A stretch of 64,000 bases of DNA from Mytilus trossulus (Eukaryota). Position 1 is the first letter of the stretch. The number at the start of each line of letters is the position of its first letter. Shown here piece by piece: positions 6,967 to 62,464 of this stretch. The DNA lies in assembly GCF_036588685.1 (NCBI RefSeq), contig NC_086373.1, positions 99,696,001 to 99,760,000 of the forward strand, read 5' to 3'. A program made the position numbers and the translations under genes. The notes below the pieces were generated by a model, which was not told where the DNA came from, did not search any database, and worked only from the letters and a program-made list of their open reading frames with translations.

Positions 6967-9820
6967 TTTCTTTTTTTAACTACTCATTTTGAAACTGTTT
7001 CTGTATAAATCTCAGATACTCAGAAATACACCTTAGAAAATCATTATTAGAAAGCGGCGTTATTCTACTTAATATGACATGACGATTGCGATGGCTATTA
7101 TCACATACATATCCATATTAAGCTACAATTTGCGCAGGTAATGCAAATCAAATTGTAAGCAGTCAATAAAAGTATACCGATAAGCCATTATAATGTTTTC
7201 CTCGTGCGACCGAGCTTATAACTCTAAATAAGCCTTGGAAAAAAGATATGGGCTGCTTATTTATTGAAATATAGTTGTTGCGACTAAAGACTGATTGACA
7301 TTCTTGATATACAATAATTATTTCAATATTCGACAATTTGTAAAAACTAACACTTGTAAAAAAAATATACCAAGCTTATAATCTTATACATTTAAAATCC
7401 GAAACGTCAATTATGATGGACTATGATCATATGATAACACTAGCAAAAGCATAAAACATCATATTTGACTAAATACAGCACAAACAATACACCTCCAACA
7501 AAAAAATATCGTTTATCTACAGAACACTAGTAATTGCAGCAAAGAATCATTGCATTATGAGTATTTCGAATAAAATAAAACGAATACGGAAAAAATTTAG
7601 GGTTTTTCTCCAGTATCATTGACATGGGTTGTATACCATATTTAGATCGAAAGAGAGGCATAAAATGACTAAGGCATAATAAAATCATAAGTCGAAGACA
7701 AAATGACAACGCCATAGAATTAAAACGAACAACAGCCTAAAGAAAACCAGGTTCAAACCACCATTGCAAATGGTCATTGTTATATTAAAGTTCGTTTTTG
7801 TGTGTGTTACTTTTTAGTGTTGTGTTTCTGTTGTGTCGTAGTTCTCCTCTTATATTTGATGTGTTTCCTTCAGTTTTAGTTTTTAACCCGGATTTGATTT
7901 TTCCTCAATCGTTTTTATGAATTTCGAACAGCGGTATACGACTGTTGCCTTTATATAAAAAGTATTGAACTAAACAAAAAGCAACTCGAAAAACTGTGGG
8001 AGGGGATGTCAGTTGTTTTGGTAGGTTCAGCAGATCCTGCTTAATATGTAAAATTTGAAAACATCGAGATTTCAGTCCGTATTCTTTATTGGTGAAGCTC
8101 AACGTATCTTAAAACCTCCGGACTAAAATAACAACTAAGGTACTCGTTGTAATGTTTAAAGTGAGTTATGATGGTCATATTCTGATAAAAAGAATCATTT
8201 CGTTTAAGAAAATTAAACAAGTGTGAGTTCAACCTATCATAAAAAAACTATTTTCAACAAACACTGTTCTTTAAAGCATCATTTTATTTAATGCCGTCAA
8301 ATATTAGGTGTTGTAAATGTTTCGACCAACGAGAAAGTAGATACCTTATCAATGCTAAGTCAAACGACAGTTGTTGTCCATTCCCTTAACGTGTTTTACC
8401 ATTTGATTTTGTATTTGATTAGGGACTTTCCGTTTTGAACTTTCCTAGTTCAGTAATTCTGTGATTTTACTTTTTTGTCCAATGACTTGACAATCGCATT
8501 CCTTAGGCATGATGTGCTGAACAATCGTTGCAAGTTTCTAAGAAGAAAATCATCTAAGACGAAAGAGCGTCTAATTTTCTTTTTTTTTTTCACCTTCATA
8601 ATCACATTCATTTTATTTTGTAAGTCATATTAGAACATATTCGAACGGTTTAATACTAGCTAATATTTCAATTCAATATATTGTTAATATATAGGTAAGA
8701 AATAATGACATATTGCAACTATGTGTGCTACTGAATACTAAGAAGAAACAAATTCAAAACAAATCTCGCTTTACAAATATATATATATATATTAATTTTC
8801 GAATAAACACACGTAACATATGTATTTAAGCAGATGAATATACTCTCAATGAAAAAAATGTGGAAAATGAATGAAAAAATATGTAATAATTTTCTTATAA
8901 AATACGTGAGTCTGGCAATAAGAGGCAAATAAACAAATATAAATACGTTCTTATTGCCAAATATCAACATAAACAATACCAAATCAGAAAAACTAAAACG
9001 CAAAACAAAACAAAAAATGAAAGAGAAAAGTTGGAAACGAAGTTAAACTTCCAAAACTGTTCTTTCTACGTTAACTCTACAATTTGTTTTGGTGGATAGA
9101 AAAAATTGGAATGCATACCCATTTTATTTGAAGAAAACTATTTGTCCTTCTTAAAATAAATGTAATTTTTGTATTATGGTGACTTGTGACATGTACTAAT
9201 CAATATAATACAATTGAAAAAATTGCATCGTAAATGTTGCACCCAGTCCATTGCCACTATAAGTCACATATTTGACAAATTTAGTAAGTTCATACAGTAA
9301 AACGGACTAACTGTTGATATTATATTTCTCAGTGAATTCATGTTTTAAATAAAATTGTTCAAATATTTAGATTAAATATATAAATAATTGTTATGTTGTA
9401 ACAAACCAACTGACGTCGTATATGAAATGAATATGTATATGTATATTGTTAACTTTCTTATGTGGATAGTCATAGTCAATAACTAAGCATGATTGAAATC
9501 AATGAATTTTTTCTTCAATTAAAAGAATACCAAAATGGTAATTAGACAAGCATTATACAAAGGACAATCAGAGATAAAAAGGGACTTAATTTAGGTTTCT
9601 CGATTGTTACAAAATATGCTTAGTCTATCTGCTGGAGTTTCGTTTGAAAATCTTCCAGTTTCCATTCGTAATGGTATTTTTTTTTATTATGAACTGAGCA
9701 CTTTGAATTTAACCAATTAGTGGTCGTGGATTTTCCTCACATCAGTATCACATAACATACTTTAAGGAGGGTGTATGATGGCCATTGATGACAAATGACA
9801 ATTGCAAGAGGTAAAAGAAG

Positions 9821-15129: not shown

Positions 15130-15460
15130 GCTGTATTTCGGTCACGTAGTATTGTCATTTAAGCGATATTTTTTTAACATTGTGAAAAAGAAGGCGATTC
15201 GGCTAGCCATCAAACCAGGTTTAACCTTCACGATTATTATTAAAAGGTACTAACCAAGTCAGGTTATGGCAGTTGTTATCAAATAGTTCGTTTCTTTGTA
15301 TGTTAGTGTTTGTTTTTGTTGCGTTTCAGTTTTCTTGTTGTTCCTTTGTTTTCCGCTTTAAGTTGATGTATTTCCCTCGGTTCTAGTTTGTAAGCCGGAT
15401 GTGTTGTCTGTCATTCGATTTGTGACTTTTGAATACCGGTATACTACAGTTTCCTTTATT
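15130..15460 (+). mobile_element. decayed interspersed repeat, family of 29320-29797
   Basis: Contains ggctagccatcaaaccaggtttaacc...accaagtcagg and the tail ...ggtatactacagtttcctttattt. Confidence 0.6.
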
Positions 15461-29319: not shown

Positions 29320-29797
29320 AGTCCTGTAATGTTGTGTTGTCATTTTAATGTTATATTTCACATGGCCATAAAAGAGGGAGGTTTGGCATGCCACAAAACC
29401 AGGTTCAACCCACCATTTTGTCTTTAAAAATGTCCTGTACCAAGTCAGGAATATGGCAATTGTTAAACTATAGTTCGTTTCCCTTGTATGTTACATTTTA
29501 ACGTTGTGTCGTTTGTTTTCTCTTATTTTTGAGTGAAAATTCACATTACTATAAGACGTCTCACTGTACTTATCTATCCCAAATTCATGTATTTGGTTTT
29601 GATGGTATATTTGTTATTCTCGTAGGATTCTGTTTAATGCTTAGTCCGTTTCTGGGTGTGTTACATTTTAATGTTGTTTCGGTGTTCTCCTCTTATATTA
29701 AATGCGTTTCTCTCAGTTTTAGTTTGTTACCCCGATTTTTTTTTTGTCCATGGATTTATGAGTAATGAACAGCTGTATACTACTGTTGCCTTTATTT
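29320..29797 (+). mobile_element. interspersed repeat carrying a twister-like motif (29365-29457)
   Basis: The body matches 55870-56120 and 52630-52780 in reverse orientation and 7750-7955 in the same orientation. Motif: gccata-aaa-gagg-GAGGT-ttggcatgcca-caa-aaccaggtt-CAA-ccc-AC-cattttg..aaaaatg-t-cctgTACCAAGTcagg-aa-tatggc. Confidence 0.8.
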
Positions 29798-43551: not shown

Positions 43552-44110
43552 ATAAAAAGAAGATGCGGTGTGATTGCCAATGATGCAACTCTTCACAAGA
43601 GACCAAATGGAACAGTAATAAAAAAAAAACTATAGGTCACATTACGGCCTTCAACAATGAGCAAAGGCCATAGTGAATAGTAAGCTTTAAAGGCATGAAA
43701 TCACAAATGTTAAACAATTCAAACGAGAATTAAAAAAAACCCGGCCTAATTTGTGAACAAACAAAAAAATGAACAAAAAAAAACCAATTAGGTAACACAG
43801 CAACAAACGACAACCACTGAATTACAGGTTAGCTCATGAATCGGGACAGGCATTTATACATACAGAATATGGCAGGGTTAAACATGTTAGCGGAATATTA
43901 ACCCTCCCCGGCTAACCGGAGACAGTGATGTAACAGAACAACATAAGAACGAACCATGAACATCTGTTGAAAAAGGCTTAACACATCAAACGGATACAAA
44001 TGTTTCTACTAAACACAGAGTGACATGGCCGGGTACTTGTACATTCCAACAACAAATAGACACTAAGTACAGATCTGAGAGTACTCCCATTTAATGACAA
44101 CTAGTTCAAC
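43552..44110 (-). mobile_element. interspersed repeat carrying a twister-like motif (43827-43918)
   Basis: Minus strand: ggttagc-cggg-GAGGG-ttaatattccgct-aacatgtt-TAA-ccct-GC-c...g-cctgTCCCGATTcatg-a-gctaacc. Related copies at 45750-46190, 20345-20520 and 17800-17900. Confidence 0.7.
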
Positions 44111-51827: not shown

Positions 51828-52230
51828 AAAAAGTAAAATCACAAAAAATACTGAACTCCGAGGAAAAATTCAAAACGGAAAGTTTCTTATCAAATGGCAA
51901 AATCAAAAGATAAAACACATCAAACGAATGGAAAACAACTGTCATATTCCTAACTTGTTACAGGTATTTTCTTATGTAGAAAATAGTGGATTGAACCTTG
52001 TTTTATAGCGCTTAAACATTCTACTTGTATGACAGTCGAATCAAATTCCATTCTATTGACAATGACACGTGAACAAACAGATATAATAGGTAAAATTGTC
52101 AAAATAGGGGTACAGCAGTCATCAGTTTGTCCAAGGATTTGTATAGTTAACTATACAAATCCTTGGTTTGTCACAATCTCAATCAGAACACCAAAAAAAA
52201 AAACATTTAACAAAGAAGCACATACAAGTA
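51828..52230 (-). mobile_element. interspersed repeat (aaaagtaaaatcacaaaaatactgaactccgagg family) with twister-like motif 51937-52037
   Basis: Matches 61305-61560. Shorter fragments at 5320-5430, 8368-8475, 46935-47000 and 58045-58200. Confidence 0.8.
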
Positions 52231-59439: not shown

Positions 59440-61270
59440 TTTTTATAATTACCGATCTTTTTACACGATTCATTGCTATTGTTTGACTACTCTTTATATC
59501 TAAATCATTGCTGTTAATATACTCATCTTTATAATTGATTCATTGCTGTTCCATTTTACACTGTGTTACCGAATCATTTAAGTTTAAAGACAACTCCTTT
59601 TAATTGAATAACTGTTGTTTTGACTACTCTCTATTACTGATTATTTGCTGTTGACAGAAAAATCTTTATAACCTATTCATTGGTGTTTATAGACCACTAT
59701 TTATAAACGATTCATTGTTATTGATAGACAAATCTCTGTTACCGACTCTTTTATGTTGATAGACAATTCCGATTATGAACTGCTGCCAATAGACAACTCT
59801 TTGCTACCTATTCATTGCTGTTGACTATTCTGTATAACTGAGTAACTGCTGTTATTAGACTATTCTTTATATTCTATTCATTTTCGATGATAGACAATTC
59901 TGTTACCGATTATAAACTGATGTCACTAGACAACTCTTTGCTATCTATTCAATGATGTTGATAGACTATTCTTTATAACCGAGTAGTTACTGTTAATAGA
60001 CTATTCTTTATATTCTATTAATTTTTTGATGATAGACAATTCTGTTACCGATTATAAACTGCTGTCCACTCTTTGTTACCTTTTCATTCTTATCGTTTGA
60101 CCACTCTTTATAACCGATTAATTGATGTTGTAAGACAATTCTTTATAATATATTCATTGGTGTTGATAGACCACGATTGATAAACGATTCATTGCTGTTA
60201 ATATACTATCCTTTATTCCTATTCTATGCATTGTTGTTCATAGACAGTTCTGTAAGACTACTATCATATAATCAATTCATTACTGTTGTAAGATTTCTCT
60301 TTGTGTAACGAATTCATTGCCGAAGTTAGACTACTCTTTATATCTTATTCTTTGCTGCTGAAAAACAATTCTTTATATTCCATTCATTGGTGTTGTTAGA
60401 CAACTATTTATTACCGAGTCATTGCGGTTAATAAGCTATATTTGAAGTCTTCATAATCTGATCATTGGTGTCAGTATGATACCGGCTATGTTCTTCTCAG
60501 ACATTTTATAATGGTATGTCTAGAGCTGGCATGTCAGGAATTGCTAGTAGTCCTTTATTTATGTACTTGTCATTGTAATATGACTAAGTATTTGACATCG
60601 GACTCGGACTTCTTTTGAAATTACTTTGCTGTGATTATTGCTTTTTTTCCCCCTTTAATTTACATTGGTTAGAGGTATAGTGGAGGTTGAAACATCACAA
60701 AACATGTTTAACCCCGCCGCATTTTTTGCAAGATGCCTCTGGCCTTTGTAAGTCTTGTATGTTTTTTAAATTTAGTTCATTTATATGTTTTTGAGGTTAG
60801 TGCGACGTTCATTTTCCCTGAACTAGTACACATTTTTATTTTGAGTGAGGTGCTTCTCCGGGTGCGGGAATATCTCGCTGCGTTGGAGGCCCATCAATAA
60901 CCATCGTTTTTCATCTACTTTTTGATTGGGTTGTTTGTCTTTTTCATATATTAAACATTGCCATTCTAAAATGTAATTCTTTGTTACCTATTCATTGCTG
61001 TTGATAGACAATTCGCTGTTATCGACTCGTTGCTTTTGATAAACTACTTTTTAACCGATTTATTGCTGTAGATAGACACTCTTTTTTTTTACCGATGCAT
61101 TGTTATTAATATACTATTCTATATAACTGACATTGCTATTGATATCATTTGACAATTCTTTGTTACCGAATCATTTTAGTTTATATACAATTCTTTGTAA
61201 TTGATTCGCTGTTGTTGAAAGATAACTCTTTATGACTCTTTTGTATAACTGATACAATTTTTTTAGACAA
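59440..61270. repeat. highly degenerate ~35-40-bp minisatellite split by an interspersed-repeat insertion (60440-60975)
   Basis: Recurrent gatagacaattct..ttaccgattcattgctgtt on both sides of the insertion. Confidence 0.8.
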
Positions 61271-61304: not shown

Positions 61305-61775
61305 AAAAAGTAAAAACACAAAAATACTAAACTCAAAGGAAAATTCAAAAAGGAAAATCAAAAATCAAAAGGTAAAATCAAAAGTCAAAACACATAAAAC
61401 GAATGAATAACAACTGTCATATTCCTGACTTGGTACAGGCATTTTCTAATGTAGAAAATGGTGGATTGAACCTGGTTTTATAGCTAGCTAAACCTCTCAC
61501 TTTTATGACAGTCGCATCATATTCCATTACATTGTCAACGATGAATGAACAAAACAATGTGATACGACTGTAATACAAGTGAGAGGTTTACCGGTATAAA
61601 ACCAAGTTCAATCCATCATTTTCTACATTTAAAAATGCTTGTACCATTTCAGGAATGTGGCAGTTGTTGTCCATTCGTTTGATGTGTTTTATCGTTTGAT
61701 TTTGTCATTTGATTGGGAAATTTCCATTTAGTTTAGAATTTTCCTCGGAGATCAGTATTTTTGTGATTTTACTTT
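61305..61775. mobile_element. two copies of the same family in inverted, head-to-head arrangement
   Basis: 61305-61515 is the diverged reverse complement of 61565-61775. Confidence 0.85.
61411..61513 (-). ncRNA. best-preserved twister-like (P5-type permuted) structured RNA motif
   Basis: gactgtcata-aaa-gtga-GAGGT-ttagctagcta-taa-aaccaggtt-CAA-tcc-AC-cattttcta(cat)tagaaaatg-cctgTACCAAGTcagg-aa-tatgacagtt. The P5, P3 and P4 helices and both pseudoknot pairings can be drawn. Confidence 0.55.
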
Positions 61776-62464
61776 TCAAAGAGTAACTCATATACAACCT
61801 TGCTATACTTAAATAATTCCACTAGGTTATGTCTCATGTGGAAATGAGTGTTAATAGACGATAAGGTGTATCGATTCATTGTTTTGATAGACAACTCTTT
61901 TGTAATATTAATTGTTGTAATATATTTGAAAAGTATTTGGAAAAGAGTTGATTTATCAGATCTGTATGAAAAACACGAAAACAAGACCAAAAAAATCCAC
62001 AAAGCACCGATCAAATAGAACTCGCAGCTACAAATCAAAAAAACAGTATCAACTAGTAAATAATGTTAACCAACATTAAAACGTCATCAGTCAGTAAATA
62101 TCCAACGGATTTTAAATAATGACGTCATAAACAGTCTGAATGAGACGTGACCTAGTGCAGTACCAAAATATACATTAAAAGTATCGGCAAGGTGTGAGAT
62201 AATAAATGTTGACTATTTTTAACAAAACATACTTGGCCATGTTTTAATCCTAATTTTTATTGGATTTCTACCGAATTGTAGTACCTTAGAATTTAGTTAA
62301 GATTTTAGTAAGTATACTTTTTGTATAGAGAAATTGAAAAATCCAAGTACAATTTCATTTTTTATTTTTAATATTCAAAGACAAAAGACTAAGTTTCATC
62401 CAATATTGATGTAATTTGATAGAGCTTTGTCCAGATCATGGTAGAATGTGTAAATTATTCAAGT

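Follow-up and report, generated by a model that had tools for sequence, protein, structure and literature searches.

The repeat at positions 61305-61553 of the window (the whole 64-kb stretch of Mytilus trossulus DNA described here) raises the question of which kind of mobile element it belongs to and whether the RNA of its minus strand folds as a ribozyme. An original prediction, made from the letters of the sequence, had read this strand as a circularly permuted twister ribozyme at the core of SINE-like, non-autonomous retroelements. Here we present a description of the module, of the retroelement that carries it and of its counterparts in distant relatives, together with an evaluation of RNA reads and of the role that the module might have. 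All analyses were performed on natural copies.

Organization of the module

All helices and both pseudoknots of the original prediction were found on the minus strand between 61411 and 61513. Read from 61513 to 61412, this strand is composed of gactgtcata, aaa, g(t)ga, GAGGT, t, tagctagcta, taa, aaccaggtt and c^aa (with ^ marking the predicted cut), followed by tcc, ac, c-attttcta/tagaaaat-g, cctg[taccaagt]cagg, aa and tatgacagtt. The features are listed below in the order of the minus strand, after the copy as a whole and before its older neighbor on the plus strand.

61305-61553 (-): whole copy, a 5'-truncated Naiad tail that ends at the fixed 3' end of the family (...ACTTTTT)
61504-61513 (-): P5, 5' strand gactgtcata, partner of 61412-61421
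61497-61500 (-): P2, 3' strand G(U)GA with one bulged nucleotide, partner of UCC at 61463-61465
61492-61496 (-): GAGGU, i.e., GA and the T1 strand; the G is the presumed catalytic guanine
61481-61490 (-): palindrome 1 (UAGCUAGCUA), occupying the start of the would-be P1 3' strand
61469-61477 (-): palindrome 2 (AACC-A-GGUU), the last base of which precedes the cleavage-site nucleotide
61466-61468 (-): predicted cleavage site C61468^A61467 A61466; N^AA stands immediately 5' of P2 in all representatives
61463-61465 (-): P2, 5' strand UCC
61461-61462 (-): T2 strand AC, partner of GU at 61429-61428
61440-61460 (-): P3 hairpin of 9 bp (C-AUUUUCUA ... UAGAAAAU-G)
61424-61439 (-): P4 CCUG/CAGG, cctg[TACCAAGT]cagg
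61435-61428 (-): 8-nt loop of P4, UACCAAGU
61412-61421 (-): P5, 3' strand uaugacaguu (tatgacagtt)
61556-61776 (+): older, diverged tail copy (82-86% identity), head-to-head with the above; module at 61561-61669

Both pseudoknots of the window copy are complementary (T1 = ACC:GGU, T2 = AC:GU), and its P2 has three base pairs only, with U61499 of the 3' strand bulged. The predicted fold of the module has an energy of -31.3 kcal/mol, which is below that of 200 out of 200 dinucleotide shuffles (z = -3.4).

At the Rfam gathering cut-offs no match was found in the window, and a permissive Rfam scan of the whole 64 kb yielded no ribozyme, including no hammerhead at E values up to 10. A local permissive scan aligned P2, P3 and P4 of the window copy to RF03160 (twister-P1) with 18.5 bits (E = 0.39; cut-off 67.2 bits). 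Genome-wide, the highest score against RF02684 (Twister-P5, clan CL00120; cut-off 37.6 bits) was 24.9 bits among the 79 candidates scored, of about 26,700. Matches to MIR2630, MIR7725 and mir-2013 are artefacts of the head-to-head pair; the MIR2630-like hairpin appears because the copies at 61305-61553 and 61556-61776 are inverted relative to each other.

Host element

In a first look at the 1.3-Gb genome, a 116-nt stretch of the repeat had more than 1800 candidate copies, and the top 40 were 98-100% identical. The 3' ends of the copies coincide sharply at a point about 100 nt past the module and their 5' ends are scattered, which indicates 5'-truncated retrotransposition and not a SINE. Long copies often form tandems that repeat every 4277 bp, each unit with an intact 1016-aa ORF. 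The product of this ORF carries an N-terminal GIY-YIG domain (PF01541) at residues 143-233 (E = 5e-7) and a weak C-terminal match to RVT_1 at residues 785-867 (E = 0.04), and its homologues match both PF01541 and PF00078.

Naiads are Penelope-like elements defined by an N-terminal endonuclease, the motifs CxC and DKA (instead of DKG) and units of 3.4-4.4 kb (Craig et al. 2021, PMC8557442); they form partial tandems and have inverted, 5'-truncated neighbors, they dominate bivalve genomes, and canonical hammerhead ribozymes are missing from them (PMC8557442). In the present element C448/C450 (CxC) and D575-K576-A577 (DKA) show no variation among 15 aligned relatives, the 4277-bp units form partial tandems (pseudo-LTRs), and the window contains a head-to-head pair. 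The main element is thus an autonomous Naiad of 4.28 kb with tandem pseudo-LTRs, and the module occupies the interval 140-245 nt upstream of its 3' end. At the tandem locus L059, about 1 kb separates the module from the preceding ORF and about 200 nt from the following one; neither a hammerhead nor any other ribozyme family matched the full tandem unit of this locus at E values up to 10.

Because the long copies have an intact ORF for GIY-YIG endonuclease and reverse transcriptase, the repeats are dead, 5'-truncated tails of an autonomous Naiad-type Penelope-like element. The view of the repeats as SINE-like, non-autonomous retrozymes is not upheld for this family, the short copies being 5' truncations of the 4.28-kb element with its intact ORF. 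The window copy itself represents such a tail, inserted recently, truncated at its 5' end and dead. It is 100% identical to many other copies and lies within 2 nt of the older one (61553-61556). Since the two arms of this head-to-head pair differ in age, they do not stem from a single inverted insertion event, and the pair may have arisen by insertion beside an existing copy.

Occurrence in distant relatives

Since a single young family offers no covariation among its copies, distant relatives were examined. Metagenome contigs scanned on the basis of protein sequence provided 80 loci encoding Naiad relatives (32-97% identity), and an HMM search (nhmmer) followed by a covariance model built from diverse modules located the module in 19 of them. 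These 19 loci, with 32-75% protein identity, all have their matches on the ORF strand. The module lies 180-860 nt past the ORF match, except inside long split matches in L085, L109 and L113, and L101 and L083 have a second module at the contig start, in the upstream pseudo-LTR, and hence modules at both ends. The module is thus always on the coding strand and 3' of the ORF, and in tandem or pseudo-LTR copies it also stands ahead of the next ORF. Of the 30 relatives with tails of at least 700 nt, 17 gave no match in the model search (R1); one of them, L126, was subsequently assigned a Twister-P5 by Rfam, so that 16 of the 30 are without a detected module. A strict text descriptor recovered the module in close relatives only and gave false matches inside ORFs; a twister-like pattern that it returned in the 3' UTR tandem repeats (loop TGTTAAGT with GAAAC) is not trusted.

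The Rfam models, proposed at the outset as a check of the twister reading, gave a divided answer: the window copy stays below every twister cut-off, but two distant relatives pass that of Twister-P5. The scores against RF02684, with the protein identity to the main family, are as follows.

L142: 38.8 bits, above the cut-off; 32% identity
L126: 38.6 bits, above the cut-off; 33% identity
L144: 35.3 bits, just below the cut-off; 32% identity

P3 is absent from all three. The GA-T1 and N^AA bases of the Naiad modules align to GAG and UAA of RF02684 (UAA in L142 and L126).

Covariation

Two alignments were evaluated, each against shuffles and against a control in which the pairing partners were slid by 1-3 columns.

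A5 (model-fitted, 29 distinct rows): paired 84.2%, shuffled 59.5%, slid partners 34-45%; covariation score 0.49 observed, 0.16 shuffled
A4 (MAFFT only, 12 families): paired 83%, shuffled 66.5%, slid partners 31-45%; covariation score 0.49 observed, 0.19 shuffled

None of 500 shuffles reached the observed values in A5 or in A4, counts that are not to be taken as probabilities because the sequences are related and A5 leans to the structure of the model; the slid-partner control and the MAFFT-only alignment A4 address the concerns about kinship and model bias. In A5, 23 of the 25 pairs are altered on both sides. The covariation called for in the original prediction is thus present across Naiad families, with both controls in its favor.

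Across the 15 family representatives P2, P3, P4, P5, T1 and T2 all covary. P5 has a different sequence in each family and is always paired (5-17 bp), with seven of seven pairs changed on both sides. P2 occurs in twelve sequence versions, all of them paired, either as 3 bp with a bulge or as 4 bp; versions found elsewhere than in the window copy include G(A)GG/CCC, G(C)GG/CCC, GGGG/CCCC, GGCA/UGCC, GACA/UGUC and UGCA/UGCA. There are four versions of P4 (CCUG/CAGG, ACCG/CGGU, ACUG/CAGU and CAGG/CCUG). The proportion of paired cells in A5 and A4 is 96-97% for P2 and 95-98% for P4. P3 varies in length with covarying pairs and is missing in the clade of L142, L144 and L126.

The pseudoknots change in the same manner. 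T1 joins loop positions 2-4 with the three bases after GA and has five Watson-Crick versions (ACC:GGU, CCC:GGG, CCU:AGG, UCU:AGA and CAC:GUG), besides GCC:GGU with one G.U pair and UCC:GGU with U.U as the third pair in four related families. T2 joins loop positions 7-8 with the two bases after P2, as AC:GU, CC:GG or GC:GU; in canonical twisters it is GC:GC. The departures of the window copy from the canonical pseudoknots had been regarded as compensatory, and the paired T1 and T2 variants of the other families bear this out. The GA before T1, the N^AA and the loop U and AAG (loop form U-N-N-N-A-A-G-N) are present in 15 of 15 representatives. The loop U and AAG are also invariant in A4; among the matches to the covariance model, hardly any variation occurs in them, in the GA or in the AA that follows the predicted cut.

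A twister-class fold has therefore been retained by compensatory change in families that share about one third of their protein residues. The reading as a twister with the order of type P5 is supported by this covariation and by the Twister-P5 matches in distant relatives. That the resemblance might be a chance feature of the repeat is rejected as exceedingly improbable: the low score of the window copy in a single twister model and the lack of any match in it at gathering level would agree with chance, but not the covariation in all helices and both pseudoknots, the above-cut-off Rfam matches in distant relatives, or the conserved position and strand relative to the ORF.

Palindromes in the place of P1

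The P1 of permuted twisters takes the form of a hairpin that connects the T1 strand to the cut site. A P1 hairpin in cis was sought at the corresponding place of the module and rejected, because the bases there are not complementary. This region contains palindromes instead. Palindrome 1 is perfect, 6-10 nt long and begins 1-3 nt past T1 in 15 of 15 representatives, with a sequence that differs by family (GGGCGCCC, GAGAUCUC, UGGGCCCA, GGUGCACC and others). Palindrome 2, present in 12 of the 15, has arms of 3-5 nt around a center of 0-1 nt and ends just before N-1 of the cut; its versions include AACAUGUU, AAACGUUU, AAUC-U-GAUU and AGUC-A-GACU. These 12 representatives thus have two perfect palindromes, each with p = 0.0003-0.017 relative to shuffles of its own linker. 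The three representatives that lack P3 keep palindrome 1 and have an imperfect palindrome 2.

Hairpins formed by the single palindromes were rejected, since even the central dinucleotides are self-complementary, a property that fits an intermolecular duplex better. According to RNAcofold, dimerization would gain 8-17 kcal/mol over two separate monomers, and the predicted pairs between molecules fall in the palindromes. The palindromy and this energy prediction together suggest that the palindromes take the place of P1 and would serve for pairing between molecules. A switch in which the T1 strand might pair with the 5' arm of palindrome 2 is conceivable, but such pairing is not consistent across families.

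Two published findings are relevant here. P1 is phylogenetically conserved yet dispensable for twister cleavage in vitro (PMC5408937), and hammerheads whose helix III is a single pair capped by a palindromic tetraloop are inefficient as monomers and efficient as dimers (PMC7229834).

RNA reads and ends of insertions

Four RNA runs with the same species label were mapped to L059:1200-5950. Both module regions of this locus were covered by approximately 30-80 reads in both orientations, and coverage of the ORF was almost nil. Most reads were 95-99% alike and continued into unlike sequence, which indicates diverged copies within other transcripts as their main source; with such an origin, and from both strands, they say little about transcripts of the real element.

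Reads of all four runs cross the predicted cleavage site. In run X20, 12 molecule ends were located at L059:1421 (neighboring depth 58), the predicted first A after the cut and one of ten listed pile-up places. The chance of such a coincidence is roughly 3-7% by our own estimate, given the few listed places and roughly 300-600 covered positions. No pile of ends was present at this position in the other three runs. The original prediction had expected matching ends or circular junctions in RNA-seq data; ends at the predicted base were thus obtained from one run and not from three, which is a weak hint of cleavage, and no circular junctions were found in the reads of the four runs. In X20 and X21, 8 of 39 and 15 of 45 molecules, respectively, start in the T-rich tail past the module at L059:1515 (5792 by the repeat), which may mark a boundary of similarity between families.

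In a biased sample of copies, none starts at the predicted cut site. Inserted copies retain the whole module and about 100 nt beyond it, so that the usual template of insertion was not cut at the 3' module; this argues against a simple role of the module in forming the 3' end. For the hammerhead of a canonical Penelope-like element, protein is needed for cutting in vitro, no RNA-seq ends occur at the site, and hammerhead mutants are without effect on insertion in vitro (PMC11167929).

Comparison with known ribozymes

The module shares with the type-P5 twister (RF02684) the succession of P5, P2 3' strand, GA and T1, N^AA, P2 5' strand, T2, an optional P3 and P4 with a U-N-N-N-A-A-G-N loop, as well as both pseudoknots. 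It differs in having two perfect palindromes instead of the P1 hairpin and, in the family of the window copy, by T1 = ACC:GGU, T2 = AC:GU and the bulged P2. The engineered mini-twister likewise has no P1 and cleaves at almost wild-type rate (PMC5408937), whereas the Naiad form is natural, widespread and provided with added palindromes.

Minimal dimeric hammerheads of Penelope-like elements and amphibian retrozymes are small self-cleaving motifs that, like the putatively self-cleaving Naiad module, stand in the repeated terminal region of a Penelope-like element. In both cases the helix beside the cut site is weakened and carries a palindrome through which two motifs could pair (PMC7229834), and RNA-seq evidence of cleavage is weak or absent (PMC11167929). 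The hammerheads belong to another ribozyme class, however, and have one palindromic tetraloop where the Naiad module has two palindromes. Twister variants with an altered or truncated P1 have been recruited by other retrotransposons, namely Perere-3 and RTE (PMC8501958; PMC7761336). In these LINE-like elements the twister is 5'-terminal, and the target-site duplication supplies the remainder of P1 (PMC8501958), in contrast to a type-P5 module with palindromes near the 3' end of a Penelope-like element.

Literature searches on twister in combination with Penelope-like, GIY-YIG or bivalve yielded no paper describing the module, in agreement with the earlier statement that it was undescribed in bivalves. 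Many eukaryotic twisters were reportedly collected by Roth et al. in 2014, without a link to Penelope-like elements. Twister is not mentioned in the paper that introduced the Naiads (PMC8557442). We regard the module as an undescribed form of a known class, twister, and the Naiad as a new host for it; its self-cleavage is predicted.

Proposed role and alternatives

The probable explanation is that Naiad tails contain a P1-less, circularly permuted type-P5 twister module whose RNA would cleave itself and pair as a dimer. The conserved G and A have catalytic roles in established twister structures. Cutting would occur between C61468 and A61467, with the guanine of GAGGU and the adenine 3' of the scissile bond acting as in known twisters. 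The palindromes would bind their counterparts in a second module, either in the other pseudo-LTR or in a second RNA, and this pairing would favor cutting in dimers. Unit-length RNA could thereby be released from tandem transcripts, so that the module would do the job proposed for the hammerhead of other Penelope-like elements. A role of circular unit RNA in making the partial tandems is speculation. The stricter model of an obligate dimer, in which the twister would be active only when two modules pair (those of the pseudo-LTRs or of two RNAs), is put forward tentatively on the basis of the modeled pairing; we regard it as possible and not as the expected outcome.

In an alternative reading, the twister fold might be present by descent, with cutting lost or marginal, and serve in the 3' region as a structured RNA handle, be it a recognition site at which the reverse transcriptase or endonuclease starts copying or an element for RNA dimerization. 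We consider this rather unlikely. Its merits are that non-LTR-type reverse transcriptases recognize their RNA in the region where the module stands, about 100 nt from the 3' end, that insertions with the whole module and tail imply uncut RNA as template, that RNA reads cross the predicted site, and that the canonical hammerhead could be mutated without effect on insertion in vitro and leaves no RNA-seq ends at its site (PMC11167929). However, GA, AA, loop U and AAG are found in all 15 representatives, although protein identity falls as low as 32-39% among them, a mere protein handle would need neither the catalytic bases nor both pseudoknots, and one run does have a pile of ends at the predicted base.

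Retrozymes of the kind envisaged in the original prediction, i.e., SINE-like, non-autonomous twister elements spreading as small circular RNAs, are much less probable still. Hammerhead retrozymes do exist in mussels (PMC7229834), the hammerhead type has been proposed to derive from Penelope-like elements (bioRxiv 10.64898/2026.07.22.740005), and the present module is very abundant, mostly in short copies. These short copies are nevertheless truncations of one element with an intact ORF and share its 3' end, short tandem arrays of the module did not occur in the sampled loci, and circular junctions were absent from the reads.

The preferred reading, that of a self-cleaving twister module, bears on a feature of the whole group. 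The hammerhead is a hallmark of Penelope-like elements, and its absence from Naiads has been taken as a hint of a dispensable or parasitic ribozyme (PMC8557442). If Naiads carry a twister in its place, self-cleaving RNA would be a general feature of these elements, provided by two unrelated classes; one place filled twice in this way would point to a real function. The twin palindromes would then make this the first twister in nature that is built for pairwise action and would offer a simple handle for probing dimer-dependent processing. If the obligate dimer is true, RNA processing would be tied to the tandem and inverted insertion structures of Penelope-like elements, and perhaps to circularization and rolling reverse transcription as well, the hammerhead having been exchanged for a twister with the dimer principle kept. 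The module also accounts for thousands of twister-like matches in mollusc genomes, which are retroelement tails.

Further copies and associated elements

The covariance model detected eight module copies from at least four families in the 64-kb window. Besides the head-to-head pair, these are the following.

15173-15278 (+): module copy
29356-29465 (+): module copy, near intact
43820-43925 (-): module copy with GAGGG and a mutated loop
45981-46077 (-): module copy with T1 CCU and GAAGU
51933-52042 (-): module copy
60662-60748 (+): module copy without P4

These six copies represent at least three other Naiad families, and most are decayed; more than 1500 genomic candidates belong to the family of the copy at 29356. 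At G000:C58:65657-71735, another intact Naiad family was observed, with a 1000-aa open frame and a tandem period of 3370 bp. The 3' UTR of the main element (L059:4790-5412, again at 9067-9689) contains degenerate tandem repeats of about 105 and about 255 nt, some stretches of which are similar to the module (…TTGAACCACACCATT…CTGTTAAGTCTGG) and could be ancient internal duplications of it.

Several Naiad relatives have SECIS_1-like elements (27-32 bits; cut-off 35) located 250-350 nt upstream of the module, which fits the selenoprotein-encoding Naiads of clams and spiders (PMC8557442). Their positions are as follows.

L091:3720-3786: SECIS_1-like
L082:3095-3159: SECIS_1-like
L099:3207-3269: SECIS_1-like
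L113:2146-2208: SECIS_1-like
L090:3318-3385: SECIS_1-like
L116:2319-2380: SECIS_1-like
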